NCBI RefSeq assembly: GCF_000315625.1
Contig: NW_005434575.1
Coordinates: 173,236-237,235, forward strand
Length of the DNA: 64,000 bases
Reading direction: 5' to 3'
Origin: Guillardia theta CCMP2712
Taxonomy: Eukaryota; Protista; Cryptophyta
Part shown: piece by piece, positions 8,347-58,677 of the stretch
How positions within the stretch are numbered: position 1 is the stretch's first letter
Layout: each line of letters starts with the position of its first letter
Position numbers and translations under genes: made by a program
Notes under the pieces: model-generated
The model's database searches: none
Told to the model about the DNA's origin: nothing
Seen by the model: the letters and a program-made list of their open reading frames with translations, nothing else

Positions 8347-8545
8347 TCTTGTTGCTCCTCCTCTCCTGCCCTTGTTGCTCCTACCTCCTCAGGCTGCTCT
8401 TGTTGCTCCTACCCTCCTGCTCTTGTTGCTCCTACCCTCCTGCTCTTGTTGCTCCTACCCTCCTGCTCTGGTTGCTCCCCGGCCCGGTAGTACCCTCCTG
8501 CTCTTGTTGCTCCTACCCTCCTGCTCTTGTTGCTCCTACTCTTGT
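8347..8545. repeat. 23-bp minisatellite (CTGCTCTTGTTGCTCCTACCCTC)n, about 7 imperfect units
   Basis: Direct tandem repeats visible; one unit carries a 12-nt insertion at 8479-8490. Confidence 0.85.
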
Positions 8546-11115: not shown

Positions 11116-14100
11116 CTACTGCTTCATGTTGTAAATGTAACAGGACGGGCATTCGTCGCTTGCTGGCTCCTCCTGCGGCTCTAGTGTATGAAAGCTTTCT
11201 ATCGCAAGTCGCCATGTCTCTTTCAACTTCTCGTCCTCGTAGCAGCTGCCGTCCGCTTCAGCAAACCAGTGTCGCCATCTCTTGGCTCTGTTCATCTTCC
11301 CTCTAATGCCCACGATGAAGTTGTTGTTCACCACATACGGCACTCTCCCGCACTCGTGGCATTTCTCCCGGAGCTCTGCTCCATCCCCCCCTATCCCTCC
11401 GTCGTACCATATCCCACTCACGTAATCGCACTCCTCGAGCGTGAAGAGACGGATCTCATCAGTCGCCCTCATCTCCCCCAGCACATGGTTCAGCAGGTCC
11501 ATCTCGTTCGCTACTGGGCCCAGGTACTTGTCAAGACGACCGTCTTGCTGCGTCTGAATGATCTCGTCGTATCTTCTGTCCATCTCCTTCCACAACTTCA
11601 CAGTCGCCCGAGTCGCCCGCAGCAAAGTCCATCCGAACCCGATCTTTCCTGTGTTCCAGAAACCAATGACGTCAGCATCTGCAGCCCATCGTCAGTTACA
11701 AGTCGACCCGTCTCAGTCCCTCACCGGAGTACATCAGGTTCACGTCATAGAGCGGGTTCCGCAACCAGATCGCGTCGGCCTCGAACAGCAGCATGTCGAT
11801 CCCTGCGACGATGAGCCGCTCCATCAGCCGATTCCTGTGCTGGGTGAGGAGGAAGAAGCCGAGAGACTGAAACTCGAAGGCGGAGGGCAGCTCCTCCCCA
11901 TCCACTTTGAGGACGCTCCTCACGATAGTGGCGTTGTGAGACGATCGCCTGAGCTGCTGGTAAGCATCGTCGTCGGAGGCGATGATCAAGGTTCTGGAGT
12001 GTACCCCATCCATCTTGGCGGTATTGCACAGCCAGGACTGAAAGAAAGGAACGTACTCTCTGTTACCGAAGGCCACCAGCAAGAACTGCTCCTGGGCCGG
12101 AAAATTCCAGAGCCTCTGATGTACCCTCAGCGCGATCTCTATTAGGTCTTCCTCTTCTGAAGCAGCTCCTGGACTGCCATCAGGAGGCCATGCGGCATCG
12201 AAGTATGGCAGTTGGAGGCGATCGCTGCAGATGTTGGACCCAGCCTTGCGGCAGTTGGCCATAGCAGAGCTGTCAGTGTCAACGCGCAGCTCCCGAGCCA
12301 TGCCGGAGGAGAAGAGTATCGTGCTATCCTGAGCCGACGAGTCGCAGGTAGTCAGTTGCAAGCTCGAGAAGTAGCAGCCTCGTTCAAGCATCGCCTCTGC
12401 TGCGAAGGAAACATCAGTTTCAGGCGTGGAGATGGAGATTTTTTCCATGTCATGCAACAAGGAGCCGACCGAGATGAGCATGTTGACACAAGTCACAGCT
12501 GGGCACCGCGAGGTGATTCGAATATCAAAAGGAAACACGGCAATGTCTCCCTCCCGATAGCGGAAATCTGCCGAGAAGTCGCAACTTTCAAGCTGATCGT
12601 AAGTCTCCATCCGCGACATGCTAGTTCGATCTGTCTTGTTCAGAACCCTGTTATAGCAGGATGCAAAATTCGTTTCTTCCTGCTCCAGGCACCACCACAT
12701 CTTGTGCGACGAGTCCTCGAACCGGCCATCCACCACCGCAACGTACCTCGCCCCTCTCAAGCACCCCTCCTCCCCTCCCTCTCCCCCTACCTCATGTATC
12801 GATAGCGTGTGCATCCCCCCCTCGTACCACCCCGACCCCTTCACCGGCCCCGCATGCCCCTCCCCCGTCTCCTCCCACTCCAGCTCCTCCCGCGTCAGTC
12901 GCTTCATCGCTCTGCTCGTGACGTACGACTCCCCCCCCTCCCCCGCGTGCGTCTGATGGAAGGCCCTCAGCCCGCCTCCCCCCGCCTCCTTCCACATCCG
13001 CCCCGCCATCCTGTAGCTCCCCCGGCATGACTTGGGATGCTCCCGGTACTCCCCGTCTACCGCCTCCGCGTACATCACACGCTCGCAGTTCACCCCCGAG
13101 TCCAGGAAGAACAAGAACCACGCCCTCTCCTCCTCCGAGTAGTACAGCACCGGGTCAAGCGCGTACCCCCGCACCTGCTCGTCCCGTAGCAGCGCTTGCT
13201 TCCTCCTCCAGCCCCGCGGCCACTCCTCCGTCGACGACTCGTACAGCCATAGCACCGGCTTCGTCGGCCCGTTGGTCGCGCACGTGATCATCAGCCGCCG
13301 CCTCCCCCCTGCCCCCTCCGCCTCGATCACGAAAGGCCAGCTCAGGTGCCAGCTCTCTCTCAGCACCACCCCCTCGTACTCGAAGCTGCACAGCCCGTCC
13401 CGGCTCACCGCCAGCCCGATCTCGCCTCGCTGGCAGTCGTTGTTGAGCACCTCCATGAACAGGTACCACTCCCTCCCGTCCCCCTTCACCAGGAACGGAT
13501 CCGCCAGGTACAAGCCCCGCACGTCCTTGACGTCGCCTGAGGTGAGGATGGGGGGGGCGTGGGAGGCGCTGGCGATGGCGTCTTGCATGGAGTCACCCAG
13601 CCCGATCCCAATGGACCAGATCATATTCAGATGAACAGGGTTGGAGGCTGTTGGAGCCGAAAGTCTCTCGTCCTCTTGTTGGCTGTCGTCCTCCGCTGCC
13701 TCAAGAAGTAGGAAGGATTCACTAGATTTCTTCCTCATGATCACAATGTACCCGCCGTCGTAGAAGTCATGGATGAAGACTTCATCGATGAAGGGGAGGA
13801 ACAGCCATTCTTTCCAATACCTGTGGCTCATGCCTGTCCTATCTTCGATGATAATCCAGCCTCCCGGCTTTGCTATCCGGATGTTCTCATGGATAGTGAC
13901 TTCTCGCTCTCTATCGTCCAAGTGCGCGATCACTGCAAGGCACAGTACGATGTCGAAGGATTCCGACGGGATCCAACCCAACTTGGAGCAATCGCTCGCG
14001 CAGAAATGACCTTGCGGCATGAGCCGTTGGATCACGTCGATGCAAGGATGCTGGATGTCAGAACCTGCCAACTTCAGGCCCGGAAACCACAGAGCAACAA

Positions 14101-15760
14101 TCTCCAGCGTGGTTCCCACTCCACAAGCGTTCTCGAACAGCAGCTCGTCTCCTGCCACGGGTATAAAGTCGAGCATCTTGTAGGTTCGATCTGCCCAGTA
14201 ACGCCATGGCAACGAGACTGTCGGCACTTGACCTGGCGGTCCTCCTCTCCAGCTGAGCCAAAGAGGATCCAATTTCGAGAAGTCAGCACCGTCATATTGA
14301 TTGTCTGGTCGACGATACTGGCAATCGTAGTTCTTGCTGTTATTACGGCACCAATCCTCCTTGTGTTGGAAACAACTCATATGCTCGAATAAAGATGAAT
14401 CCGGCCTGACTTCCGGTGCAACTTGGTCAGTCCCAAGAACAATGCTGACCTTCAAATCCGCCTGTCTCAACATGGACAAGTGTAAAACAATAGGTTCGTT
14501 GTCAAATAATTGAAGGAGATTGCAAGCAAGCCTCTGATGTATGCTAGCAAGATCACATTCCATCTTCAAGTAATCTGCAAATCCTCCATGATAACTGATG
14601 GAGAAGCTATCGATCGAGAGATTGTCTATGACAGAAACAATGAGCTCCTTGCTGCCATGCATCGAGCTGTTGCTTTGAATGTAAAGTATGCTGCCTTGAA
14701 GTTTGAAATCTAGATCCAACATCCACGCATTAGATGACGAGACTGTGCTGAAAGATTTGGTGAGCGCTTTGTAAGGACCAAAGGGATTGTTCGAATGATA
14801 CAACTTTGAGGAACAAACTCCACTCTCATTGATACATGATAAAACAGTGAGGAACCAGTTGCCATTGGACTTGAAGATGTTTGGATTTCGGAACAACGAT
14901 CCCTGCAGTAAGGTTCCACTTTTCCTCCAACCAAACGGAAAGTTTTGGGCGGCATACAACTTGATGGACTTTAGAGTGGGAGAAGATACCAGCATGTACC
15001 AACTATCTTCACTCCTGAAAATGTGAGGGTCGGACATCTGATGAGCTTCCGACAGAACAATCTTATGCATTGACCAACTGACCAGGTCCCTGCTGATGAT
15101 CACACCGATGCTACCCTGATCCGGCGACTTGAAGGCAGCCATCTTGTGAAAAAGGTAGTAGAGTGGAGGAGAGAGTCCGTCCGTGACCAGACAAGGATCC
15201 TCGAGCTGGTCCACCTGACCTAGACCTCTGTACAAGAGTGGGGAGACCATGGCCTGAGGGCACGTCTGAGACGGCGAGAGGTCTTCGATCCGTGACAAGA
15301 CTTTTAGAGCCCGTTGGCCGGCAGACCCCGGGAGCCTCGTGACCTTTCCGCAGTATCGAAGCGTGCAAGAGCTGAACCTTTGACTGCTGCAGTCTGATAC
15401 CATCCAGAGGAAGGTCGAAGAAAGATTCTCGCTGGGTAATGGATACTCGAGGCTGAAAGAACATCGAGAAGAATTCTTGTCGGGGATGTACCAGCACACC
15501 TCGCTCAGCTTCTGTTTGGAGGTGACATGGCTATCACATCCTATAAACGAATCTGAGAGGCAGACAGAAACATGTCCCAGCAACATCTCCTCGGTTGCTC
15601 CGTGCTCTATTGAGAAATGCAGCCAGGGGACGTTGTCAGGCTTGTGGAACAAGTTGACATCTCCGCTGCATTCCACATCCGCATCATCAGCGCAGGAGCA
15701 ACAAGACAAGAAGGAAGAGATGAGGAGGGCCAAGAGGACGAGAGAGGATAGAGCCTTCAT
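11116..15760 (-). CDS. Secretory-pathway multidomain glyco-enzyme: signal peptide, GH43/GINT1-N-like propeller, class I SAM methyltransferase, second propeller, GT77 nucleotide-diphospho-sugar transferase (one intron 11679-11724)
   Basis: Signal MKALSSLVLLALLISSFLSCCSCA; EDPCLV..GSIGVIISRD..MSDPHIF; ENACGVG..SFDIVL..RIAKPGG; LADPFLV..YLFMEV..GEIGLAVSRDG..WHLSWPFV; SWLCN..LLFEADAIWLRNP..VVNNNFIVG..KMNRAKRWRHWF. Confidence 0.8.
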
Positions 15761-15979
15761 CGGTCTGCCAGCACGAGGAAGACTACAGCCCCTTCACATC
15801 CTCCTCCTCCCTCCCCACTCATACTCTATCCCATCACTCCATCGCATTCCAGGATATCACTCATCAATAAGATCACTTCGATTAAAACCTTAGAGCAGTT
15901 TTTTCGCTGCCTTTTTACTTTTCTAGTTTTATGTTGAGGCGGACTTGTTAGTTTACCCTTTATATCTGTCGGACCTTGT

Positions 15980-17645
15980 GGCATACTGGCAGTAAAGTCA
16001 TTGGCTACCTCGCTGCTAGACGACGTGAGCTCGCCTGCCCTCCCTCTCAACTTCTTCCCCTTCCTTGAGCCAGCCCATCCACCTAGGCGTGATGGCTCCT
16101 CCGAGTGCAGGACTTTCCGCGGGCCCTTCCCCGTACGGTCACTCCCCGCCGCCGGGAGTCCCCCGGTCGGAGTGCCTACCGTACCCCTCTCTCCGAGGCC
16201 GCCTTCGACCTCTACTTCGGCGGAGAGGAACCGAGAATAACTTGCCCCAGGAGGCAGAGCAAGTGGAGGCAGAAACCGCAACAATCTCCGCAGTGGGTAA
16301 AACTTCGCTTGATCCGGACCCCTGGCAAGCCTGGGTGGGGGACCCGTCGGAGCCCGGCTCGGTACTACCGTAGTACCGTCCCGGCCGGATCACACAGCGG
16401 GCCCATCCGAATAGACGCGACGGTTTCGGAGTCACCGTTGCCAGCGCTTGGGCCACGTGACTCCTTCAAGTTTCTTTTTTTTCCTTCAAGACCGTCTGAC
16501 ACAGCGGCGGTCCGACGGTCCGATCCGGCCGGCCGGGTGGCTCCGCATATCTAGCAATGAGCAACTTAACTCTGAGTAAAAAGAAGCAACGGAGTCATAA
16601 TGCGAGCCTTACGAATAACCTCGCCGCTCCCGGACCCTGAGGGCCCGGCTCGGAGTCTCACAGAGGCTCGGAGTTGCCTTGAAGGCACTGAATGATGACC
16701 GTTCGACATCGGGACATTGAGGTCCTCGTGATAGTCAAACATTGCTGACAGCTAAAAAGTCGTAGTCTATATCTTTAAAAGTCTAGTCACACGGTAGTTT
16801 GCCATGATAGCTAACCGTTTCGAGTTGTGCACCTCAGCGGCATGCTGGCAGTAAAGTCATTGGCTACCTCGCTGCTAGACGACGTGAGCTCGCCTGCCCG
16901 GCCCTTCCTCTCAACTTCTTCCCCTTCCTTGAGCCAGCCCATCCACCTAGGCGTGATGGCTCCTCCGAGTGCAGGACTTTCCCGGCGCGGGCCCTTCCCC
17001 GTCACCCCCGGAGTCCCCCGGTCGGAGTGCCTACCCCTCTCTCCGAGGCCGCCTTCGACCTCTACTTCGGCGGAGAGGAACCGAGAATAACTTGCCCCAG
17101 GAGGCCGGGCAGAGCAAGTGGAGGCAGAAACCGCAACAATCTCCGCAGTGGGTAAAACTTCGCTTGATCCGGACCCCTCCAAGCCTGGGTGGGGGACCGA
17201 GCCTCGGTACTACCGTCCCGGCCGGATCACACAGCGGGCCCATCCGAATAGACGCGACGGTTTCGGAGTCACCGTTGCCAGCGCTTGGGCCACGTGACTC
17301 CTTCAAGTTTCTTTTTTTTCCTTCAAGACCGTCTGACAGAGCGGTCCGACGGTCCGATCCGGCCGGCCGGGTGGCTCCGCATATCTAGCAATGAGCAACT
17401 TAACTCTGAGTAAAAAGAAGCAACGGAGTCATAATGCGAGCCTTACGTCTCTCATAACCTCGCCGCTCCCGGACCCTGAGGGCCCGGCTCGGAGTCTCAC
17501 AGAGGCTCGGAGTTGCCTTGAAGGCACTGAATGATGACATCGGGACATTGAGGTCCTCGTGATAGTCAAACATTGCTGACAGCTAAAAAGTCGTAGTCTA
17601 TATCTTTAAAAGTCTAGTCACACGGTAGTTTGATAGCTAACCGTT
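15980..17645 (+). repeat. Tandem duplication of an about 830-bp GC-rich unit (15980-16819 and 16839-17645)
   Basis: Both copies begin GGCA(T)(A/G)CTGGCAGTAAAGTCATTGGCTACC and end GATAGCTAACCGTT; long stretches are identical. Confidence 0.95.
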
Positions 17646-17955
17646 ACCTGCTGACGGCCGCCTCACGTCGTATTCGACCTTCTTATACGCCTTGAATCAA
17701 GGGTCCTCTAGTACTCACTTTTCTCGAGTCTGGGCCTATGTAAAATAGCTGAGGTTTCCACCCAAACCCTTTTTGACCTTCCCCTTGGGACGAAATATAG
17801 TGCTTCCCTCGTTTCGCTTCTTCTTCACCCCCTCTCGCCGACTGCTACATCGCCCTCCCTCCCACGCTCTCACGCCTCGATCTCTCTGAGGTCTCGCCTG
17901 CCCTTCCTCTCAACTTCTTCCCCTTCCTTGAGCCAGCCCATCCACCTACGTTCTC

Positions 17956-18318
17956 ATGGCTCCTCTGCACGACTCTCCCTCCCCCGTCCTCCCTCTCCTC
18001 CCTACCCCTCTCTCCGCCTTCGACCTCTACTTCGGCTCTGGCTCCCTCGCTGCCTGCCCGCCCTCCGACCCCTCATGCCTCTTCCTTGACTGGAGCACAG
18101 TGGGCTTGGACCAAGGGAGCCGGGAGGCGTGGATGGAGGCCTGGGAGGGGCCGGGCCTTCCAATAGAGAAGGAGGATACAGATTTGTTGGAATGGAGTGA
18201 TACAGAGGACGTAGAAGACGACAGCAAGCGAGAGAGCAGACAGCGAAGGGCAGATACATACAGTAAGCGATTTATGATGGCAAAAAGAAGCAGACCAGTA
18301 AGATTTGGGACTATGTGA
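17956..18318 (+). CDS. Small repeat-associated ORF (MAPLHDSP family), copy 1
   Basis: 120-aa ORF; first 53 aa nearly identical to ORF 19893-20258; both tails contain SDTED. Confidence 0.4.
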   Translation: MAPLHDSPSPVLPLLPTPLSAFDLYFGSGSLAACPPSDPSCLFLDWSTVGLDQGSREAWMEAWEGPGLPIEKEDTDLLEWSDTEDVEDDSKRESRQRRADTYSKRFMMAKRSRPVRFGTM

Positions 18319-18765
18319 TCTGAGGGAGACAGAAGGAAGAAATGGATACAGCTTTGTACATATTGAGTAAACGATTCGCAAACTTTCAGTTCCTTTCGCA
18401 GAGTTTGTCAACGAATTCCGGAAGAAGGGTCCAACATCTTGGTCATCTTGACCTCCTGTCAAGCGGTGGAGGAGAAGACCTCCTCACTTTCCTCTTAGCT
18501 AACCTTCTTGCTTGTGGCAATTTCCAGAAAAATTGCGCACAGCACTAAGAGGGCAGGGCGGGTAACTTCAGGCAGGCTACTGAACGGTAAATCATGCAGA
18601 CTCTTCAGACCCAGTGATGAGCGCCTACGATTCTGTCCCGGCCAGCTCGGGTTCCAACGGTCACGGTCCGTGTTGCAGATGACGGCAGCCAGCCGTCGGA
18701 GTAACGGGCCGGCCGAGCGTGCCCGGCATAATTGACAGGGCGGATTGCCTCTGACAGCCGGGCGT

Positions 18766-18933
18766 GTGGTAGTACTTGTGTAGTACTTGTGGTACGGTAG
18801 TACTTGTCACTCCGGTAGTACTTGTGGTAGTGCTTGTTGTAGTACTTGTTGTCACTCCGGTAGTACTTGTGGTAGTACTTGTGTTAAGTTAGTACTTGTT
18901 GTCACTCCGGTAGTACTTGTGGTAGTACTTGTG
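18766..18933. repeat. Minisatellite of GTAGTACTTGT(G/T) units interspersed with GTCACTCCG
   Basis: About a dozen AGTACT-containing units read directly. Confidence 0.9.
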
Positions 18934-19249
18934 ATAGAGCTACAGAGTGACCGGCCGATGATCTCCGAGCCGACTTGACTGGTCTTACTTGTATCCACTT
19001 ACGGTTGATGATGTCTGATCCATACAGGTCCTTTAACCCTAGTGTAGTCTCCTTTTCTGTAACACCCGCCATTGCCCCCTGCCTCCTCCCCCCTTCTTGC
19101 TCCCTCCCCTCCCTACCCCTCTCTCCGTCTTCGACTCCTCTGCTTCGGCTCTCGCTCCCTCGCTGCCTGCCCGCCCTCCGACCCCTCATGCCTCTCAGGC
19201 CCGCCGGTAAAGCAGCTGAAACCCTCTCTTCATTCAAAGTTAAGTCACC

Positions 19250-19680
19250 TGCCCAAAAATCAGTCACTGAGTACGAGTATAGTACCCAGTGACCGTGCGG
19301 TCCGATCACCGGACCGCCCCGGGCCCGCGCTCTCGGCCAGGCCGCGGGGGCCGTCCGAACTCCGAGGCTCAGCACTGGCGGGGATCTGCCCGCGGCCGGG
19401 CACTGAGACTCGGCCCCGGAGTGGGCCCGGGAGCCGGCCCGGGCTGCGTCCGATACCGTACGGTCACAGTGACGGTGCCCTGCCAGTATCCAAGTTTCAA
19501 AAGTTTGGACTGTCGAAGTTGGTCACCGTGGCTGAGTCCGGTCAGGTTTGGATATTCGAAGAGACTCCGAGGCTTCACTGCCGCCAAGCGAGTGACTTGT
19601 AAGCAAGACCGTCAGCAGATCATCGGATATGCGGCACCAGCGGGTAGGCGTAATGGCGTAGGTCGGATCATGCAATGAAT
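19250..19680. repeat. GC-rich micro-palindrome island
   Basis: Dense CCCGGGCCC, CCGTACGG, GGTCCGATCACCGGACC, TCAGTCACTGA hairpins around an AAGTTTCAAAAGTTT core. Confidence 0.7.
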
Positions 19681-19892
19681 CGACGCGTTCTGAAACCTAC
19701 GGCACGGTCTTTACTCGTATCTTCACTCGTATCCATAACTTATTAGCCTCCCGGGACCAAGCCCAAAATTCACCCCCTTCCCGAGAGTCACCCTCCTCCT
19801 CACTTCTACTCCTTGTTGCTCGCTACTTGTCCTTACTTCTCCCTTCTCCTCTTGCCACCTGAGTTTCTGTTCGTACCCTTCCGACAGATACC

Positions 19893-20258
19893 ATGGCTCC
19901 TCTGCACGACTCTCCCGTCCCCGTCCTCCCTCCCCTCCCTACCCCTCTCTCCGTCTTCGACCTCTACTTCGGCTCTCGCTCCCTCGCTTCCTGCCCGCCC
20001 TCCGACCCCTCATGCCTCTTCCTTGACTGGAGCACAGTGGGCTTGGACCAAGAGAGCAGTGGCGGCAGAGCGTCAGACGAGGAGGATGAAGTTACGCAGC
20101 AGGAGAGTGATACAGAAGACATGGATGGAGACTGCAGGCACGAGTGCAGGGCGATATGGGTGGCTGCATACGGTAAGCATGGTCACGATAGGGATCAGCA
20201 AGAGACGGCGATGATAAAACAGATGCAGAGGAGCAAAGCATGTCTAGGGAGACAGTGA
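19893..20258 (+). CDS. Small repeat-associated ORF (MAPLHDSP family), copy 2
   Basis: 121-aa ORF paralogous to 17956-18318. Confidence 0.4.
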   Translation: MAPLHDSPVPVLPPLPTPLSVFDLYFGSRSLASCPPSDPSCLFLDWSTVGLDQESSGGRASDEEDEVTQQESDTEDMDGDCRHECRAIWVAAYGKHGHDRDQQETAMIKQMQRSKACLGRQ

Positions 20259-20413
20259 AGGCAGAGAAGATAAAGGGAGGAGGAAGGGGGGGCTCGGCTT
20301 CTCTTCTCCTTCCCTGCTTGACAGGAGGGTGAGCTGAAGAAGATCCACACGAGAGGAGGAGCAACACCAGCGAGTTCGAGCTGTCGATCGTGACCAGCAT
20401 ATCTTGTATGGTA

Positions 20414-23400
20414 TCAATCTCGTGAGAGCTCATCAGGTCTTACTGGCATCATCGGTCGATATCTGCTTGAGGGGACCGGTTTAGTACTCTTGGCCTTTAG
20501 TTGCTATATCAACTTGTATTATCTCCTTGAATGATCTCCACTCACATGGCCGCTATCACCTCCGAGCATGCCAGCACCCGCCATCTCTCCTCTCGTACCT
20601 CACGCCAGCTCACGGCGGAGGAGCTTGCAAGTAGGTCACGGCTTCTTCCGACTGGCTTCCTTGAAACTCCCAGTCCCACTCCAGCGGCGCTCGCCACTTC
20701 CCGCTCGACACGGGGCACGCGTACATCCAACGGTCGTAGAGAGGATTTCCCAGCTGCGCACTCGTGACTCGACCAGTCGCGGTGCACTCGCGGGTAGGGT
20801 TGCCATTGACGCGCATCCTCGTGAGGACATCGAGAGCTCGCCGCTTGCCCGGGTTGGCGTCGCTCGATCCTGCTGGCGGTGATCAGAGGAGAAGCGAGGG
20901 AGGGGAGGGGAGGGGGGCAACTGACAGCCGAGGGGGAGGCGGCGAGTAAGCAAGTGGACAGTGAGGGAGGAAGGAAAACAGTAAGAAGGGAATGAACGGG
21001 AAGGGAGGGAGAGAGGAGGGCGAGCAAGAGGCATATAAGCCTAGTACCTCCCGTGAGCTCCTCTGCCGTGTATTCATCGAAGGTTCTCTTCTTCTCGAGG
21101 GGCTTGAACGGAAGTCCGTGGGTTTGAACTGTGTCATCCTAGGTGGAATCAGCGCGAACCTGGTCGACCAGTCGAGTACCTGTCGGTCGATCAAGTCCAT
21201 CTTGTAATATCCACAAGCTTTCGAAAGGAATCCTGAAGAATTCCAAACGCCTCACTCTAGAGCACAGGTCAAACTGCTCATGGACAATTACCTGGTTGCG
21301 GCATCGCCAGGCACAAGAAATTCTGAAGGGACTGCAGCAGTATCAGCCCCGATTCCGGCGATCTTCAAGCTCACCTCCTGATCAAACCCTGGCTTCGAGA
21401 AACGCGCGTTCAACTTCTCTGGAAGGCCGATCTCGGGGTCAACCTGGCAGACGGGGCACATTCAGCGCACTAGTGAGATCAGGGTAGAACGGACCTTGTT
21501 CTGAGCCAGGATCTCCTTGAACATCCTGTGCTTGTCCGCTACCGTCTACGAGCATCCCGTCAGCACCTCGACCACTAGGAAGATCCAGAGAGACCTGAGG
21601 GTTCTGCTCGGTACCGCTCGCATTCCTCGGGACTTTGTGAGCATTCAAAATGTTCTCGATGATCTTTCAAAGGGGGGGAGACAGAAGTCAGAGAGCAGGG
21701 GAAGGAGAAACAAGCAGACCTCGATCAGATACTTGATGTCAGACTCGTCATATGGGAGGGACGTAGTTTGAATGTCCGAGTCCAAGATCATGGTCGACGT
21801 CCCCATGTCGGTTCCCATGGGGTCCATGACGACGTCCATGCCTTTGGAAACTCATCAGTGAAAGAAGACCAGGAGCTTCAGTCGGATACTTGATAGGTCG
21901 TCAACAGGAGGGGGAGCGTGGACGGTGGGGGTAGGAGGTGGAGGAGGAGCAGCGACTGTGTTTCCAGAGTTGTCAGCTCCACTTGCGCTTGTGTCCTGAA
22001 AATCAAACAATCAAAGGGTCGAGTCATAGCTGCACCATCCCTTTGCCTCCTTCACCTTCGGCTCCTTCGGTTGGCTGTCCCTCAGCTGCATCAAAGATCA
22101 GCTGTGCATCGGATTGAGACAGAGAGACTGGCAGACCTTCTTCAGGTAGTAGCTCAACAAGTCTCGAGTGAAGGTCAGGGCCTCGGGATCCAGCAGGAAA
22201 TATTTCCCAAACAGCATGCGAGAGGCAGCGCTGGTGTCGGCCCCACCCGCCTGCTGCGCTTGTCTCGACTTCTCACTCTTGATGATGTTGGTAGTGGCAT
22301 GCCTGGGACCCATCAGGTCAGAAGACATGCAGCGACTGGCTGGTGAGTACTTGAGATTCCAGACCGTCAACCCTACGATGCTTTCCCCCATGGTCAACAT
22401 CATGTCGCTGCACAACGCCTGGGAGCCGATCAGAGATCCGACGGCCACTGGGCGACTTGCGGTCACCTTGAGCCTGCTGGTAGATGCTGGCGAGACTCCA
22501 GCGTTCGCTGAAGAGAGAAGTCCGTGAGCAGGAGCAGAGCTGAGAGCGAGGAACATCCAGCACCTCGTTGGGCTGCCTGATCGCCTCGGGGCATGACCGG
22601 CAGTGCGAACCGGAAGCAGTCGAGGAGGTAGAAGAGGAGCAACCTTGCTTCTGAGGACGTGCACAAGAACTTGACAAGGTGTCAAAGCTTGAAAACGTCG
22701 CAAGAGTGAGAGCAGTGCTTTCCCACCTGGTGCTCAGCTGACATGGAGTGAATCTTGATCGTCATGATCTCGTAAGCATGACGGTAAAATCTTCGTTGCT
22801 GAAAGAGAAGTGGCATCAGTTCCGATGAGAAATCTCCTCTTCTCCCCTCCATTCCCCTCCCCTACATTATCTGGCATCTGCTTGTTGTTTTCACGAAGAA
22901 GCTTTACCACATTCTGAGAAATCATCAGCATCCTGTCGGCCGCATGCTCGGCTTAGATGCGGCAAGATAGGTTCCCACCTCCATGATAGAGAAAGCCATC
23001 GGGTGCGAGGTCATGATGCCGCCAAGAGCAATCAGCGCGTCCCAGGCTTCGCTCAACTTCGCCAAGCTCACTTCAAGCTGATGGACCTGGCGGGTACGAA
23101 CAGTCACGGTCTACCTCTAAGAGCAGGTGTAAGCACAATGTGAGAAGCAATCGACTGAGGCGTTGCGGTCTTGTCGAGGGCCCATGGGTGCGCCATCTCC
23201 ACCACCTGCTTGCAGGCATGAGCCGACAATTTCAAGTCTCTTGCTTCTCTGCCTTGGCTCGTCCTGCGCTGTCCAAGAGGAGAGCGCAGTTGCCTGTTGG
23301 TGAGCTGCAGCCGTTGACGATACTTCCGAACACAGTCACGTGCGGATCATAAGGCGCTTGCTGATCAGAGATGTACAGTTAGAATCATCTTGACAAAGAT

Positions 23401-37398: not shown

Positions 37399-40300
37399 TA
37401 TTCCCCCCTCCTTCCTCCCGGTTCCCCCTCCCCTCCTCTTCTCCCGCCGTCTCTGTGTCTTGCTCCAGCTCGCCTCCCAACTGTCACCAGCTGCCTCCTC
37501 CTCTTGACCTCCTGCCTCAATCAGGTTATCGTGGACGAGTGCGGCTGCACCCCTGAGTCCAGCGTCGCCCTCCTGCTTCGTTTCTCCCCCAAGAACCTCA
37601 TCCTCATTGGCGACCACAAGCAGCTTCCTCCTACCTCCATGATCTCTCCGCAGGTGAGGAGGAGGAGGAGGAGGAGGAGGAGCAGGGCAGGCGGCGGGAG
37701 GGGGGAAGGGGGGAAGAAGAGGAGGAAGAGGAGGCCCTCTCCTGCTCTTCCGTGACTTGCAGGAGCAGGAGAGTCACGGTACAGGGCATGTTCGGTCCCT
37801 CCTTGAGCGCTGCATCCTCTCCAGTGGCTCCTACCACAAGTTGAAGGAACAGGCAAGCGATTTGCCTTTCTTCTCTCCCCATCCACCGTCTCCTTCTTCT
37901 GCTACTTCTCCCGCTCCTGCTTCCGCTCCCATCACAGATGCTCTCTACTATCTTCCCATCCTCTCTCTTCCTTCGCCCTCCTCTTCTCATCCTTCTACTT
38001 GCCGCCTCCTCACCCGTAAGGTTCTTATCGGCTCCTTCAGTATCGGATGCATGATAAGATCTGCGATGTTGTATCCGAGAGATTTTACAACGGCAGTTTG
38101 ATCACCAACAAAGAAATCAGCCGCATCAGGAGGCAGACTTCTGCCCATCCCTTGGTACTTCTTGTTTCTCTTCTGCTCCTGCTGCTGCTTTTCTCTTCCC
38201 CTTTTAGCTTTTTCAACCTTGTCCTCCTTCTCTCCTGCCTTGTCTTCTTCTCCCCTCTTCCCTCCCTCCAACTCTTACCTGGTCGTCTCCTCTGCTCCTC
38301 CTCGGTCTCCTCGCTGTTATCCACCCTTCTTATCGGACTCAATCTCCTCCTCATCATCGATATCCCTCCCTCTTCCTCCTCTCCGAGCTCATGGGCGCGC
38401 AGGTTTGGGTCTCAACCTTTGGAGCAGAGGATGTGAGCGAGCGGTCAAAGTCCTACTACAATCAGGAGGAGGTGGACGCCTGCGTCAGGGTTGCCAAGAG
38501 CCTGCGAGGAAAGGATCCTTTCTCCTCCATCGCCATCCTCGCCTTTTACAGGGGGCAGGTGCAGGAGGTGGCGAAGAGGGTCGGGGAGGAGGAGCGAGTG
38601 GAGGTGATGACGGTGGACTCGTGTCAAGGGAGCGAGTTCGAGCATGTAGTCCTGTCCCTCGTCCGATCCAACAGGATGGGCAAGTTGGGGTTCGTGAAGG
38701 ACAAGCAAAGAATCAATGTCGCCATCTCTCGCGCCAAGAAGTCGCTGGTCATAGTCGGCAACGAGAGGATGGCATCTTCCGATGAGGACTGGGCTGCCGT
38801 GTGCCGAGCTTGCGAATCGCTTCCCCTTGACAGCTTCGACCTCTCCTCCTTCCCTCCTCCTCCTCCTCCTCTTGTCAAGAAAGACGTCCCCCGTGCCCCC
38901 CCGATGGAAGGAGGAGCGCGCTTGCCGGTCTACTCGTTGCCGCCACTTCTAGCCGGGGCAGACGAGGAGGAGGAGGAGGAGGAGGAGGAGGAGAACTTGT
39001 ACGATGCCTACTCAAGGGACAGCAGCAGCAGGAGTGGGAGGATGAGAATAGATACGGCAGCAGCCGCTCGATTCATCACGCACGCGATAGGAAGGAGCGG
39101 AGTTCTCCCTCCTCTCCCCTCCAAGCCCGAGCCTCGTGCCTCCTCCTGGGCCAAGGCGATCAAGATGGGTGGTGGCGGCGGCAAGAGCGGCAACAGGGTG
39201 ACTGGCGGGGGAGGAAGGAGCAACGGAGGAGGAAAGAGCGTCGGAGAAAGTTGTGGCGTTAAAGGGAAAAGGAACGAAGAGGGGAGGAGAAAGCAGGAGG
39301 AGACGTGCGCTGAGTGTGGGATCCGAGGAGACGGCCTGGAGCAGGACGAAGACAACCCTGGCACCTATTACTGCCTGGACTGCTGGTTCTCGTGGCAGGA
39401 GGAGGAGGAGAGGAAGGAGCAGGGGCTGTTGGGGATCCGTGAGGAGAGGAGGGAGGAGAGGAGGGAGGAGAGGAGGGAGGAGAGAATTGAAGGGCTGACT
39501 GAGGAGTCACTAGTTGACATCTTCGGGAACAGGAGGGAGGTGGAGGAGGTGCTGCGGAACTTTGCGGGGTTGGAGGACCGGCTGGAGAGGACCTTCACCG
39601 TGCTACTAGAGCGAAATTCTGCCAAAGACTTCTTCGCGGAGGAGGAGGGAGAGGATGTGGAGCTTGAATGGGACTACTTCCATGTGGACGAGGGAGAGGA
39701 GGAGGAGGGAGAGGAGGAGGAGGAGGAAGAGGAGGAGGAGGAGGAGGAGGAGGAAATCTTGAGTGTAAAGTCAGGGCATCGCACTGGAGCTGAACAGAAT
39801 TCCACGAGAAATTCTCGACCCGGAGCAGGAGCGGGAGCAGAAGTGGGAAAACGACCAGGGAAACAAGAGGGGCAAGGAAGTGGAGAAGTGAAGGGGAAAG
39901 GAGCAGAAAAAGGAGCAGGGAGATTGGAGAGGCAAGCATCGGGAAACGGGAAAGGAAAGGGGACTGGGAAAGGGGAGAAAACGGGAGCGGGAGGGGAAAG
40001 GCAGGGGGACGAAGCAGGAGGAAAAGGACCGGGAGTGAAGAAGGGAACTGGAAGAGAAGTGCATGGGAGAGCGGTAACCAAGGGGGCAAAGGGAGCAGCG
40101 TCGGCGGAAGTGGACACAGCAGCAGCAACCACAACAAGAGCAGCAGGTGCAGGTGCAGGTGCAGGTACAGGTGCAGGTGCAGGTGCAGGTGCAGGAGCAG
40201 GAGCAGGAGGAGCAGCAAGCGAGGAGAAGCTGTGTCAGGAGTGCGAAAAGATTGGGATGGGTGCCGTTGACCCGGAAGATGAGCTCTTCTACTGCGACGC

Positions 40301-40616
40301 CTGCTGGAGTCTCTACCTTGAAGACGACAAGGAGGAGGAGGAGGAGGAGGAGGAGAAGAAAGTGGAGGAGGAGGAGGAGGAGGAGGAGGAGGAGGAGGAC
40401 GACGAGGAGGAGGACAGCAAGAATCCTACTCGCCTCCAGCTGATTTCAGAGCTGAGGAGGTTGCTGGCAAGAGATGAGGACTGGAGGAGTCTTGACGAAG
40501 AAGTGATGGCGGCGGCGATGCTGTCGGCTGGGACGGAGGAGGAGTGGAAGGAACTGCTGCGAAATAGCATGGGGAGGATGCGGAAAGTTGATCAGTTCTC
40601 ACGGCGATCATGGTAG
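35935..40616 (+). CDS. UPF1/SEN1-like superfamily 1 helicase with acidic C-terminal tail and two C4 zinc-finger-like motifs (start crosses a gap)
   Basis: VQGPPG|TGKST, IFLCTVAS, VIVDECG, LIGDHKQLPP, SLLER, EQ|YRMH..IC..VSERFY, FYRGQV, TVDSCQGSE, RINVAISRAK. Confidence 0.9.
35991..36090. other. Assembly gap
   Basis: Run of N. Confidence 1.
36560..36646. repeat. (CTGCTC)n intronic microsatellite
   Basis: Direct reading. Confidence 0.9.
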
Positions 40617-40725
40617 GAGGAGGCGGGGAGGGAGGGGAGAGAGAGACGAGACGAGGAGAGGGAATAGGTGGGCAGAGGAGGGGAGGGGATGGGAGGAAAG
40701 CAGTTTGGAGGGAAGAGCTGAACCA

Positions 40726-41510
40726 NNNNNNNNNNNNNNNNNNNNNNNNNNNNNNNNNNNNNNNNNNNNNNNNNNNNNNNNNNNNNNNNNNNNNNNNNNN
40801 NNNNNNNNNNNNNNNNNNNNNNNNNNNNNNNNNNNNNNNNNNNNNNNNNNNNNNNNNNNNNNNNNNNNNNNNNNNNNNNNNNNNNNNNNNNNNNNNNNNN
40901 NNNNNNNNNNNNNNNNNNNNNNNNNNNNNNNNNNNNNNNNNNNNNNNNNNNNNNNNNNNNNNNNNNNNNNNNNNNNNNNNNNNNNNNNNNNNNNNNNNNN
41001 NNNNNNNNNNNNNNNNNNNNNNNNNNNNNNNNNNNNNNNNNNNNNNNNNNNNNNNNNNNNNNNNNNNNNNNNNNNNNNNNNNNNNNNNNNNNNNNNNNNN
41101 NNNNNNNNNNNNNNNNNNNNNNNNNNNNNNNNNNNNNNNNNNNNNNNNNNNNNNNNNNNNNNNNNNNNNNNNNNNNNNNNNNNNNNNNNNNNNNNNNNNN
41201 NNNNNNNNNNNNNNNNNNNNNNNNNNNNNNNNNNNNNNNNNNNNNNNNNNNNNNNNNNNNNNNNNNNNNNNNNNNNNNNNNNNNNNNNNNNNNNNNNNNN
41301 NNNNNNNNNNNNNNNNNNNNNNNNNNNNNNNNNNNNNNNNNNNNNNNNNNNNNNNNNNNNNNNNNNNNNNNNNNNNNNNNNNNNNNNNNNNNNNNNNNNN
41401 NNNNNNNNNNNNNNNNNNNNNNNNNNNNNNNNNNNNNNNNNNNNNNNNNNNNNNNNNNNNNNNNNNNNNNNNNNNNNNNNNNNNNNNNNNNNNNNNNNNN
41501 NNNNNNNNNN
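40726..41510. other. Assembly gap
   Basis: Run of N. Confidence 1.
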
Positions 41511-41701
41511 TGGAAGAAGGAGGAGGTGAAGGTGGAGGAAGGAGAAAGGAGAAAGAGGAGGAGAAGGAGGAGGAGAAGGAAAGAGAGGAAGAGGAGAAGG
41601 AGGAGAAGGAGGATGTGGGAGAGGAAGGAGAGGAAATCCATCACAAACGCAGATGATCACAAACGCAGGAGGACGAGGCGACAGGGGAAGACGGTCAAGG
41701 T

Positions 41702-44684
41702 TCAGACCCTCACCGATCGCATACTAGTCGCCATCCTCGAGACTGCTGGGGCCGAGCTCGCCGCCTGCTGGGCGAGTCATGAGGAGGGGGGGGGTAGACC
41801 CCAGCAGAGCAGACGCACCTCCTCCCCTCCACCGTTTTGAAGAGTTTGACCAGTTTGCGGCTTGTCCGCCTGCGAGCAAGGAGCGTTACGGGAGAACGGC
41901 TGGCAGGTGCACACCAGCTGGGCGTGTTTGACAAGGTCGTTGAGGGACATGGCGGGTCGGGTGTAGGGAGCTGGGGGCAGCCCGCAGATGTCGAAGTCGT
42001 CGTTGCTGAGGATGTGGAATCCTCTGAAAGGAAAGTGAGTGAGTGAAGCAGGGAGGGAGGAGGTCAGGGGGAGGAGAAAGGCGGGAGAGGAGGAGGAGGA
42101 GGAGGAACAGAAGCAGGCGGGGCGGGACCTTGAAGGTGGTGGTGGTGGAGGAGGAGGAGGAGAAGGTGGTGGTAGTGGTGGTGGAGGTGGAGGTGGTAGT
42201 GGTGGTGGAGGAGGAGAAGGTAGTGGTGGTGATGGTGGAGAAGTCTCACCTGTCCGTGACGTCTTTATATCGCTGGTGAGAGATTCGATTCAACTTGCGC
42301 GTCATCTCCAGGTCGCTCATCTTGTACTATCAAGACAATCTCAGGGGGGATGGGACGAAGAAGGGCCAGGAGGAGGAGGAGGAAGAGGAGGAGGAGCCAG
42401 AGAGTGGAGGAGGAGGAGGCGGAGACAAGTGTCCTCACTTGGTATGCCCGATTATCTTCCTCTCGCTCTGTTATCAACTGCGCATGAAGCAATCATCTCA
42501 AGATCAAGATCAGAAGTTTGTCGCACCTTCGCTTTCATCTCACTCTGAGCGGCTTCATGTGCCTTCAGCGCCTGCAAGCCTCGAATGAGAAGGAGGGAGG
42601 GAGAGCGGATCGAAGTGAACCAGGCACACGGTTGGAGAGAGGGGCAAGTGGAGCCAAGGAGTCAGATAAGGAGGAGAGGAAGGGAGGAGCGATTAGAGGA
42701 GGGAAGACGGGAGACGAGGTGCAAGAATAGATGCGAGGGGCGACAAGACTGGAGCAGGAGCATACGTTGAGACGGTCTTCATCTTTGACTAGATGCGACG
42801 TGATGTTAAACATCGTGGATTCACTTTGCTGGCACGTCATCATCAGGCAGTTCCCCTCGAGCAAGACAAGCTTCGGCCCACCTGATAGGTCGGAGGCAAT
42901 TTCTTGATCCAATCCTTCCCCCTGATCCCAGAGATCTCAGCACAGGTGAGATGGAAAGGAAGCGAAGAACAAGGGAACCTCCGCAGCAAGTTCTCCTTCA
43001 TGGTGGACTGGAAAGCCTCTTCCTTTTCTTCATCGGTGTACCTCACTTTGATCGCATCAAACTCGCGCCTGCGAGTGGGCAGTGTGACGGTCAGGAGCCA
43101 ACATTTCCCAGCTCCCATGTCAAAGTACCCTTTCCAGAACCTCTTCATGACATCCTGTCGTTCCTTGTCCGCCTCGAACCTCATCCTCTCTCCGTGATGC
43201 TCCTTGTACGTGTTGCTGATGATATCGAACTCTCTCGGTCGGTTCACGTTGGTCAGGAAGGGTTGCTTCCGAGGAGGCGAAGGGATACGAGGAGGCCGGA
43301 GAGCGGGAGGTGCCTTGCGAATGAGCCTTCAGAAGCTTTGTTTGCAAGGAGGGAGCTTTTCTTCACTCACCCAGTGATGGTCGGCGTATTTGAGTGTGGA
43401 GATGATGTTGTAGTCGGTGTGGTTTGCGACCACCTATTCCAAGTCATTGTCTCCTGCACAACAGCGACAACTCTTGCCAGAGAGGGGGGTTTGGTCCGTG
43501 GAACAAACTTCACTTCATGGATATGTCCTCTCTTGGGCTGGTGGGTGATGATGTCAAACTTCTGTTCCAGCTGGACCTGGACACCTTGACTCAGACCTCA
43601 CTTTCTTCACCTCCACTGCCAGCTACCTGCCGATCCCAGGCGTCGTTGAGCATGTGCTTTTGATTCTGCAGCTCCATGGTTGAGATCATGTCCTCAGTCG
43701 CCTGATCCCGGAACCGTTGCAAGATAGGATCAACTACAACAAAGAGTCATCCCGACAAATCCTTGACATCCTCGTTCAGTCGCTTGCCTATAATTTCCTC
43801 TCGTTTCTTGTAGTAGTTGGTGACATAGTGCGGTTTCTCGACTTCCCCAGCACTTGGCGGAGCATTCTTCGCCGCCTTGTAGGCCTTGATCCCCTCCTCC
43901 CTGTATCAACGAACGTTCAACACATCACGCAGCACTGACTCATGGCTCAGATAGTGTGGAGGTAGTGCCGGGTGTTGAGGGCGGGAGGAGGAGCAGGCGC
44001 GAGATGCGAGTGAGGACCGTGAGGGAGTGAGGTGGGGGATGAGGCGAAGAGGGGACAGTGAGGAAAGAGAAAAAGGAGGGAGGAGGAGGGAGGGGAGGGG
44101 AAGGGAAGGGGAAAAGGAGAAAAGGGGGAAGGGGCGAAAAAGGGAAGGGAGGAAAAAAGGAAGGGGAGGGAAGGGAGGGAAGGGGAGGGAGAAGGGAGGA
44201 GAAAGGAGGGNNNNNNNNNNNNNNNNNNNNNNNNNNNNNNNNNNNNNNNNNNNNNNNNNNNNNNNNNNNNNNNNNNNNNNNNNNNNNNNNNNNNNNNNNN
44301 NNNNNNNNNNTACACCTCAATTATGCCCTGGTACAACAGTAATTTGTACGGGTGTCATATAAGACTACCCGTATAATTTATACCCCACCCCTTTAAATTG
44401 ACAACCCAAGAATCAAAGCGACAAAGCTTTCCCGGGTGAGATGCGGAGGGAACAAGAAGGACAGAAGAGAGAAGGAAGGGAGAGAGGAGGGAGAAGAGAC
44501 GGGAAGAGAAGGGAGAAGGAAGAAGATGAGGGTGGAGAAAAGGAGAGGAGGTAGATGGAGGAGATCGTAGCGGGAGGGAGGGAGGGAGGGAGGGAGGGAG
44601 GGAGGGAGGGAGGGAGGGAGGGAGGGAGGGAGGGCACCAGCTCGCGGCGTCGTGCATGACCGTCATGTCTTTCAACGAGCTCAT
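41702..44684 (-). CDS. Hypothetical protein with repeated [FY]x(I)[IL][ST][NH] motifs, possibly axonemal; first exon tentative across a gap
   Basis: Exons give VDPILQRFRD, QKFDIITH, DYNIISTLKYADHHW, REFDIISNTYKEHH..KRFWK, MFNITSH, GFHILSN. Confidence 0.55.
44211..44310. other. Assembly gap
   Basis: Run of N. Confidence 1.
44572..44634. repeat. (GGGA)n microsatellite
   Basis: Direct reading. Confidence 0.9.
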
Positions 44685-52449: not shown

Positions 52450-53810
52450 AAATAAAAAGGGGGGTGGGGGGGTGAATTCAGTCAGACCTCGGGGTAATTT
52501 GACGGAAGGGGAGGGGTCATCGACCGCTGGGTGCTCTACACATGGGGGTAGTGGGGTGGGAACAGAAATGTTTTTCTGCTCCCGAGTAGGGTTATTTTGA
52601 TGTGATTGAGGGGGGTACGTTTCCGTAAGGTTTGTGGGTGTTATGGTGTACACTACCCCTACCCCAATCGTTCCCCACCCCCACCCGTGCATAAAACACA
52701 CACCACCCTATCATGTAAGCCCCGACTGTCTAAGGACCCCTCCCCCATATCGTTTTTCTCCCCTTTCCGAGAGTGGCCCCCTACAAGTCTCGGCCCGCCG
52801 CCGTACGGTACGGTACGGTAGCCGCGCCTCAGTGCCCGGCCCGGGCCCGATCGGATTACCGATGGCAGTGCCATCATCATGACAGTGTGTGATGCCATGA
52901 CTCTCAGAGTCGGATGGGCGGGCCAGGCGGCCCGGCCGCCGAGTCAGCGGCCGCCACGCCCGCCGGGCCGGGCCGGTCTCAGCCACGGTACGCCGTTGCC
53001 AAGTTCCGACGGGCCTGAATGGGCCCGCCGTCGGACGCGGCGGGGGGCCGCCGGGCCGCTCGATGGCTGTGAGGTGATCGAATGAGTCGGATGGGGAGAC
53101 TCTGAAACTTGCCTCACTGCCGTTTCACAGAGCCTCCGAGTCCGACGTGACGTTCCGAAGTTCCGAGCCAGTGTCCGATCACTGGCCGCGCAGCCTCACG
53201 GACGCCGCGGCCTCAACGGTCAGTGCCAGTGACCGTCCAGGGCGGGATCGGACTACCCGGACCGCCGCCGTCCGTGCGTGGCACGGATCGGACTCCGGGA
53301 CGGTGGCACGCGGCCGCGGCCCGGGTGTGGCAGGCCGCAGTGAGCAAACTTTGAAACTTGAAACCGGGCCGGGGGAGTCACGGCGTCACGTACGATCATA
53401 CTACGTGAGAGTGATGTACGGTCACAGTCAGAGGCAATCATCATGACTTGAATGCTGAACTTGAATCCAGGCGCGGCCCGAGCCTCGGAGATCTAGTGAG
53501 CCTGCCTCGGAGCTCTAGTGAGCCTGCCTCGGAGCTCTAGTACCGGAGCCGGGCTATAGGAGCACTGAGAAGTTACCCCGCGTGTTAACTTCCGAGGTTC
53601 TGCCGCTACACCCACCTCCAGCCCGAGACCTACCCCTCGTCAGAACACCCCCACCCACAGATATTACCCTAAATGGACCCCGTATGACCTTCATCAAGAG
53701 TACCCTCTACGCAGGGTATCACATACCCCACCCATGTCTGCACCCCCCTTTCTTCACCCTACGACGAATGACTACCCCCTACCCCCCTACCCTCCCCGAA
53801 ATCAGTAGTA
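52450..53810. repeat. GC micro-palindrome island (52790-53560) flanked on both sides by TACCC/GGGTA tracts
   Basis: GATGGCA-G-TGCCATC (52861-52875), GACTCT-C-AGAGTC (52899-52911), CCGTACGGTACGGTACGG, AAACTTTGAAACTTGAAA core, 22-bp tandem CTAGTGAGCCTGCCTCGGAGCT. Confidence 0.75.
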
Positions 53811-58454: not shown

Positions 58455-58677
58455 GGAGGAAGGAGGAGAGGAGAGAGGAGGAGAGGAGAGGGGAGAGAGG
58501 AAGCAGAGTGGGGAGAGCCTCCCGGCGGAGAGAGGAGAAGAGGAGAAGAGGAGGAGAAGAGGAGAGAGAAGAGGAGAGAGGAGGGGAGGAGAGAGGAGAA
58601 GAGGAGAGAGGAGAAGAGGAGAAGAGGAGAAGAGGAGAAGAGGAGAAGAGGAGAAGAGGAGAAGAGGAGAGAGAAGA
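58455..58677. repeat. Purine-rich (GAGAAGAG)n low-complexity repeat
   Basis: Direct reading. Confidence 0.85.

Follow-up and report, generated by a model that had tools for sequence, protein, structure and literature searches.

The 64,000 nucleotides (nt) of nuclear DNA from the cryptophyte Guillardia theta CCMP2712 considered here, and called the window below (contig NW_005434575.1, positions 173,236 to 237,235 of the forward strand, assembly GCF_000315625.1), include two head-to-tail plus-strand copies of an intergenic unit: copy A, of 861 nt, at 15975-16835 and copy B, of 815 nt, at 16836-17650. They differ from each other less by substitution than by short GC-rich insertions that create or extend palindromes, and it is the origin of these insertions that is at issue. 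The intergenic home of the two copies is bounded by a minus-strand open reading frame (ORF) of 1354 amino acids (aa) at 11696-15760, whose start codon is at 15760, and by a small plus-strand ORF at 17956-18318. The latter belongs to a small local gene family whose ORFs (17956-18318, 19893-20258 and 19072-19602) are of about 120 aa and begin MAPLHDSP, and of which there is a fragment near 19086-19195. Each unit opens with about 200 nt in which the leader and first codons of that family survive in decayed form, the homologous and now degraded part of copy A being plus-strand 16030-16222, and continues with 600 or so nt of GC-rich, unique DNA that ends in a tail richer in AT. The family is without a Pfam match and has zero reads in the one RNA-seq run examined, a run from which no reads could be placed on the A/B unit either. 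Known structured RNA families gave no match in the unit, exact-pattern scans of metagenomes gave none for orthologous sequence of it, and of contigs from other assemblies, looked for via their encoded proteins, none are on record. Nor is there a further full copy of the unit in the 87.1-Mb, 669-contig nuclear genome, where elsewhere only the 5′ ends of the neighbouring genes match.

Are there really two copies? An independent run of 2026 (X11) yielded raw 38-nt DNA reads that span 15300-20700 with at least 99% identity and no base or length differences listed, and their mean depth is 11.1 in A plus B against 9.6 in the flanks. As reads that fit both copies were placed once, a single locus assembled twice would have given about half the flank depth, and the even coverage at flank depth without differences therefore means a genuine tandem duplication and not an artefact of assembly or sequencing. 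Such an artefact might have been one locus assembled twice, two haplotypes set one after the other, or GC-rich hairpins misread by compression, and contigs from two other runs do carry the copy-A state at single copy-B sites, with G>C plus GCG at 17339-17340 in run X2 and with GGCCG absent at 17103-17107 in run X1. However, discrepancies of that type are what bubble-popping in a graph with k=31 would be expected to yield from two copies so nearly identical, and that may be all they are, though they may alternatively reflect real polymorphism or conversion between the copies. With every position of both copies matched by the independent raw reads, and the depth of A plus B equalling or exceeding that of the flanks, an artefact is extremely unlikely, and the misassembly of which the initial annotation had warned is excluded. 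The tandem duplication that gave A and B is real and recent, and the intergenic DNA that it doubled is silent.

A global alignment of A with B has 786 matches, 8 mismatches and 15 internal insertions or deletions (indels), the lengths of which are 5 nt (seven), 4 nt (two), 8 nt (two), 7 nt, 3 nt and 1 nt (two). The hand count in the initial annotation, about 13 indels of 3-8 nt with few substitutions, was accurate, as 13 of the 15 are in that range, and all eight of the insertions that it wrote out in brackets are valid placements of real indels. By BLAST the figures are 5 mismatches, 15 gap openings and 71 gap bases. Substitution divergence is about 1%, and since about half of the mismatches touch an indel, indel events exceed isolated substitutions by approximately 4-5:1. 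Copy A has the longer allele at 11 sites and copy B at 4. G+C amounts to 75% of the inserted bases but to 58% of the unit, and 11 of the 15 events are in its GC-richest part, a trend only (P 0.10). No ancestral base was lost or changed in 10 of the 13 events of at least 3 nt, which are clean insertions; a single substitution adjoins each of those at 16504 and 17448, and 4 nt separate the 7-nt insert at 16148 from a 1-nt indel. Comparison with the coding duplication at 47313, which had been proposed alongside the initial claim, reveals an ordinary ratio there, unlike that of A and B: the repeat at 47313-48481 has 85 mismatches and 13 gaps. The same goes for other duplicates in the window and in 200 kb from 20 other contigs, which have 0-0.3 gaps per mismatch; for instance, there are 7 mismatches and 0 gaps between the gene pair 19892-20057 and 17955-18120, and 66-69 mismatches and 20 gaps in an inverted repeat in locus L008.

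Which allele is ancestral can be asked of three coding paralogs, at 17883-18045, 19820-19982 and 19000-19157, though they are alignable only over the first 200 or so nt of the unit. The one at 17883-18045, on the plus strand, is the third copy of the initial annotation, comprising the 5′ region and start of the small ORF 17956-18318, and was said to be without the insertions, both tandem copies having gained theirs independently. That is borne out for the sole A-versus-B events alignable there, GCCCG in B at 16896-16900 (alternatively CGGCC after GCC), which makes GCC.C.GGC, and TACCG in A at 16177-16181 (alternatively CGTAC), which makes TAC.C.GTA. Both are absent from all three paralogs and so are insertions, one gained by each copy. 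Among the inserts that are common to A and B, yet absent from the three paralogs, are CGAG at 16102, making CTC.C.GAG, and CCGAGG at 16193.

All of the remaining events of at least 3 nt are given here as read on the plus strand. Copy B has gained CCGG (or CGGC) at 16982-16985, which makes CC.C.GG, and GGCCG at 17103-17107, whose minus-strand product is the same 10-mer as that at 16896, and it has a complex change at 17448-17452, TCTCT with an adjacent substitution, that is outside the palindrome rule given below. In copy A, GTACG (or ACGGT) at 16133-16137 makes CCGTACGG and fits AC.C.GT+AC on the minus strand. The 7-nt GCCGCCG (or CCGCCGG) at 16148-16154 is itself CCG.C.CGG and not derivable from its flank by the rule, and CGTCG at 16345-16349, itself CG.T.CG, has no flank template. 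At 16354-16357 CCGG was inserted in the centre of a pre-existing GAG.C.CTC to give GAGCC.C.GGCTC, the stem growing from 3 to 5 (8 on the copy-B background). The 8 nt at 16366-16373 are the sole unmistakable inverted duplication among the inserts, GTAGTACC being the reverse complement of GGTACTAC, and in the resulting odd palindrome, 16360-16378, the stem has grown from 5 to 9 bp. There follow GCG at 16504-16506, a 3-nt tandem duplication which ordinary slippage also explains, an 8-nt insertion at 16697-16704 in the centre of a pre-existing GATG.A.CATC, again outside the rule, and TGCCA at 16800-16804, which makes TG.C.CA and then TG. Three inserts (16354, 16366 and 16697) are thus at the centre of odd palindromes that were already there, and independent events have repeatedly had the same product, namely the 10-mer of 16896 and 17103, the GTACGGT of 16133 and 16177, and the CCCGGC of 16982 and 16354.

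The inserts create or lengthen inverted repeats. For odd palindromes, with a 1-nt centre, that span them, the summed stem length is 44 against means of 24-33 (P 0.0002-0.017) under four nulls: shuffled inserts, random local k-mers, random positions, and inserts permuted among the sites. Even palindromes spanning the 13 inserts are not enriched, and a rule without a pivot fits 3 of the 13 against 0.4-1.8 by chance (shuffle null 1.8, P 0.26), which goes against the palindromic (P) nucleotides that the initial annotation had counted among the possible sources. What does fit 9 of the 13 is a pivot rule, in which the ancestral bases are followed by one pivot, by the reverse complement of the preceding k bases (k at least 2), and by a re-copy of the last r bases (0-4); the null means are 1.0-2.6 and the maximum in 3000 trials is 7, the rule being post hoc. 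Of the seven 5-nt events, five share the form xy -> xy C y'x' xy. The inserted string appears, then, to be largely dictated by the adjacent bases; in its commonest form one C/G pivot is followed by the preceding 2-8 nt in inverted copy and by a re-copy of 0-2 nt. Alignment, outgroup polarity and the odd-palindrome test together support what was the core of the original proposal, that short GC-rich insertion, creating or extending palindromes, has acted repeatedly and independently on both copies. Junction microhomology and loss of flanking bases, the marks of end joining by DNA polymerase theta, were not encountered, 10 of the 13 being clean insertions without consistent microhomology at the return points. 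Simpler chemical rules were also considered by hand analysis. Most events are at odds with a centre of hAT type, complementary to the flank, most with breakage at G and insertion of C opposite it, and most with the filling-in of staggered cuts of 4 or 5 nt.

Is this a peculiarity of one locus? An independent test excluded A and B and drew on 20 other loci (the 200 kb from 20 other contigs) and the rest of the window, out of a sample of 264 kb, cut into 100-nt tiles; those of at least 65% GC and non-ORF, which is a crude mask of any open frame of at least 150 codons, were compared with expectation from dinucleotide shuffles. In them C/G-centred odd palindromes are 3-8 times commoner than in the shuffles, with 221 against 69.6 expected for stems of at least 3 (z 16), 85 against 19.6 for at least 4, 32 against 5.8 for at least 5 and 13 against 1.7 for at least 6. 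Odd palindromes centred on A or T have no excess in these tiles and even ones have a weak excess at stems of 4-5 (e.g., 19 against 8.0), while the C/G-centred excess is almost absent from GC-rich ORF tiles and entirely so from AT-richer non-coding tiles. The four C/G-centred classes of central triplet are all enriched 2-3 fold and no A/T-centred class is. Of the 7-mer xy S y'x' xy, to which the 5-nt events lead, there are 304 instances where 96 were expected (z 18), and the vocabulary that islands have in common (TCCGATC, GGCCCGG, ACCGTAC and similar) consists of words of that form. The palindromes with stems of at least 4 number 144, from 15 of the 21 sources, and they are of 96 distinct sequences, so that the signal is more than a single word repeated. 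The activity is therefore not, as had been thought, locally intense, the same signature being enriched in GC-rich non-ORF DNA of unrelated loci. A pivot that is always C and never G on a given strand, with which the five 5-nt events agree, is not borne out by the islands elsewhere.

One of these islands in the window, at 52780-53070, is single-copy in the genome, has C/G-centred odd palindromes at high density, and looks like an end state of the same process. The wider zone 52600-53100 has a TACCCC-rich part (~52650-52760) followed by a GC core in which at least five odd palindromes, C/G- or A-centred, and a run of (ACGGT)3 occur in 140 nt. Genome-wide there are 81 occurrences of (ACGGT)3 and 41 of (TGGCA)3, its backwards control, where chance would give about 0.2, the units of both being G-centred odd palindromes; at one of the sites (C70:5220-5279) there is an array of 12 units. 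That 5-nt microsatellites mostly have palindromic units was considered and abandoned, since only 5 of 71 arrays do. A discrete, conserved, multicopy palindromic element, such as a GC cluster, a repetitive extragenic palindrome (REP) or something like a miniature inverted-repeat transposable element (MITE), was not encountered, the unit and the second island being single-copy and 96 of the 144 palindromes distinct; as the islands are single-copy, they have not spread as elements. A 12-nt GC-rich insertion on the plus strand at 8479-8490, in one unit of a 23-nt minisatellite (8385-8540) and derived by comparison with the other units, forms CCGG.C.CCGG and GGTA.G.TACC, its right flank being one arm of the latter, and is a polarised example of the same insertion process inside a regular repeat. 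A 14-nt GC-rich insert at 58517-58530, with arms CTCC and GGAG around CGGC, breaks a purine-rich GAGAA/GAGGA array, and may be the seed of a new island.

What process would write palindromes in this way? Probably A and B have diverged mainly via a single genome-wide and insertion-biased one, short-range strand-switch (fold-back) synthesis. It would insert 3-8 nt, most often 5 nt, of GC-rich (75% G+C) DNA into non-coding DNA with the ancestral bases kept, each event creating or enlarging a palindrome with a single central C or G, and repeated events would build C/G-centred palindrome islands of GC-rich non-coding DNA genome-wide. We envisage that, where there is a nick, a break or a stalled fork, the 3′ end under extension would turn, copy a few bases of the strand just made or displaced, and then resume on the original template. 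In a variant involving a flap, synthesis from a nick would displace f bases, and the polymerase would add one base and copy back along the displaced 5′ flap before ligation to the flap; an insert length of 2f+1 is predicted by it, and f = 2 would reproduce the 5-nt class exactly. Both this mechanism and the cause of the C/G pivot are things that we infer rather than findings. Complementarity that extends up to a single central base is needless for a functional hairpin or cruciform, which suggests copying rather than selection for structure. That individual steps are still visible in A and B would be because the copies are young, at about 1% substitution divergence, and unselected. A bolder proposal, a serious one but to be held tentatively, is that a strand turn on a 1-nt C/G pivot, either dedicated or strongly favoured, writes small palindromes continuously into non-coding DNA, outpaces substitution there and creates GC-rich intergenic (promoter-side) islands de novo. 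If so, it would be a mutational drive of sequence composition unlike any described for a nuclear genome, possibly due to an unrecognised polymerase or nuclease activity.

Several considerations weigh against fold-back synthesis. The initial statement that most inserts make hairpins from the adjacent bases holds for odd palindromes, as the summed stems attest, but not for plain inverted copies of the flank, with the whole insert the reverse complement of ancestral sequence within 40 nt in 4 of 13 cases against about 3 by chance (P ~0.2-0.4). The sample is 13 A-versus-B events of at least 3 nt plus a handful of others, and 11 of the 13 are polarised by pattern alone, with no outgroup. Four of the 13 (16148, 16345, 16697 and 17448) are outside the pivot rule, and the P values for that rule are optimistic because it was derived from the same 13 events that it was scored on. 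All five of the 5-nt events that follow it have C as pivot when oriented by the re-copied dinucleotide, and there is no such asymmetry genome-wide (165 against 134). It is difficult to see true self-priming in a turn of 1 nt after which no more than 2-3 nt are copied, there is no visible microhomology at the points of return, and the flap variant leaves the events with r = 0 (16354, 16366 and the shared CGAG insert) unexplained.

How, then, do other sources of such inserts compare? Excision of a cut-and-paste transposon that forms hairpins, whether hAT-, Transib- or RAG-like, leaves a footprint in which the target-site duplication remains along with P-nucleotides, and much here is reminiscent of it: the insert lengths are quantised (5 nt seven times, 4 nt twice, 8 nt twice), the junctions are palindromic, 16354, 16366 and 16697 are at the centres of pre-existing palindromes, and 16896 and 16177 can each be described as a 5-bp duplication to which one complementary base was added and from which one base was lost, RAG and Transib being known to favour GC-rich or hairpin targets and to make 5-bp duplications. 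However, the flanking direct repeats range from 0 to 6 nt instead of revealing a constant duplication frame, even palindromes of P-nucleotide type are not enriched (3 of 13), a base that has to be replaced does not become its complement (16896 would need T to become G), and 15 footprints in 0.8 kb at about 1% divergence would imply enormous traffic, yet there is no interspersed repeat in the 264-kb sample. Profile searches with PF05699 and PF12940 for the hAT dimerisation domain and the RAG1 core had no match in the genome, a weak negative as they had none in control genomes either. Footprints are accordingly an unlikely origin. A defence that recognises and mutates duplications, akin to repeat-induced point mutation (RIP) or methylation induced premeiotically (MIP), had been suggested initially, and the two copies are indeed both duplicated and heavily altered. 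It is very unlikely to be the cause: the mismatches number only 8 in 794 aligned bases and hardly favour transitions, other duplicates are untouched, among them tandem repeats of 98-99% identity and an inverted repeat of 641 bp that is perfect, and the same palindrome signature is in single-copy islands, so that duplication is not what triggers the process and it is not RIP-like.

The polarity of the events could also be the reverse of that supposed, the long alleles being ancestral and the differences due to slippage deletion between short direct repeats that flank small hairpins in DNA already rich in palindromes. Most events do have the form X-mid-X, with direct repeats of 1-6 nt on either side (2-7 equivalent placements), a classic substrate for such deletion, and 11 of the 13 are without an outgroup. 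That makes this explanation worth stating but still quite improbable, given that both of the polarisable A-versus-B events are insertions, that inserts common to A and B are absent from the three coding paralogs, that the 12-nt insert of the same type in the minisatellite unit is derived, and that neither the origin of the palindrome-rich islands nor the 75% G+C of the differing bases would be explained. Alternatively the inserts may be short patches from other GC islands, acquired by ectopic templated repair or micro-conversion, or they may be selected protein-binding words of promoter islands. Identical products from independent events (16896 and 17103, 16133 and 16177, 16982 and 16354) and a vocabulary common to islands elsewhere, such as TCCGATC and GGCCCGG, would accord with either. 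But the common words are all of the form xy S y'x' xy, just as the local rule predicts, the flank of the insert itself predicts its content in 9 of the 13 events, and a tract of 4-5 nt is too short for conversion. Selection on A and B is unlikely because the copies show no transcription and hold a decayed gene fragment. Patch copying or selection is thus less economical than the local rule, and an improbable source of the inserts.

Fold-back synthesis has relatives elsewhere, and the likenesses are as instructive as the differences. Short template-switch mutations are known in primates and yeast (PMC7954356, PMC9435742, PMC8604942). In the short-range switches of Ripley's quasipalindrome correction and of the four-point model of Loytynoja and Goldman (PMC7954356, PMC9435742) the new bases reverse-complement adjacent sequence, as those in Guillardia may do in part; and, as in Guillardia, inverted repeats are created or perfected, the event is local (within tens of nucleotides), and no mobile element is needed. 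Those mutations are mostly length-neutral clusters, however, whereas the Guillardia events are pure insertions with a preferred length of 5 nt, have a fixed 1-nt C/G pivot, copy only 2-8 nt, exceed substitutions several-fold, and are confined to GC-rich non-coding DNA, the composition of which they dominate. In yeast, fold-back inverted insertions of about 5-34 bp have been documented at breaks (Yu et al. 2024, PMC11724301), and the 3-8 nt inserts here, which are in a similar size range, would resemble them as very short templated inverted duplications beside a lesion. There, microhomology is used, the break is induced, and the events are rare and raised only in RPA or Rad27 mutants (PMC11724301), while here the turn has no visible microhomology, the ancestral bases are kept, and the activity seems to be constitutive and to shape the genome. 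With P-nucleotides and the excision footprints of hAT, Transib and RAG there is likeness in palindromic extra bases at junctions, in the preference for GC-rich DNA or hairpins, and in lengths near that of the target-site duplication; but P-nucleotides are even palindromes that abut the flank and those here are odd with a C/G centre, there is no constant duplication frame, and neither element copies nor a transposase was detected, the transposase search being a weak negative. The GC clusters and palindromic repeats of organelles, of yeast mitochondria and of volvocine and other green-algal organelles (PMC3017802, PMC4524435), are also GC-rich palindromic DNA restricted to non-coding regions which they inflate. 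They, though, are discrete repeats of tens of nucleotides with a recognisable consensus, unlike nuclear increments of 3-8 nt in islands each of which is unique. In none of these known relatives is insertion pure, with a mode of 5 nt and a fixed C/G pivot, and at the same time dominant over substitution and restricted to non-coding GC islands of a nucleus, and a literature search of limited coverage found general work on template switching and organelle palindromes but no description of such a nuclear process.

If fold-back synthesis does underlie these islands, a single insertion-type process sets the sequence, GC content and palindromic texture of a whole class of non-coding DNA in this organism, a class in which substitution, selection and mobile elements would play little part. 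It would also make Guillardia a natural system with short-range template switching as the dominant mutation class, such events being rare elsewhere and hard to study. The A/B pair offers dated and polarisable examples, and the pivot rule gives quantitative predictions for new mutations. For annotation of this genome there would be reason for caution, as a GC island or "palindromic motif" that lies close to a gene may have no function.

Some further features of this DNA may be recorded. The perfect 641-bp inverted repeat is at 488-1128 and 1848-2488 of locus L013 (G000:C9, from 100001), its arms having 100% identity, a spacer of about 720 bp and no micro-insertions. The minisatellites at 18768-18937, with 12- and 50-nt units based on GGTAGTACTTGT, and at L007 4654-5102, with 16.5 copies of a 26-nt unit, vary mostly by small indels (TAC triplets and one TCAGGC insert) that are non-palindromic. 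The 1354-aa ORF upstream of copy A, for which a word-based protein search gave no homologue, is uninterrupted and joins GINT1_N, class-I methyltransferase and nucleotide-diphospho-sugar transferase domains. Finally, 40000-42000 is AT-rich, with GC down to 0.29 and very strong GC and AT skew, and within it, at 40588-41660, long ORFs on one strand overlap those on the other, a hint that the sequence is repetitive or of low complexity.

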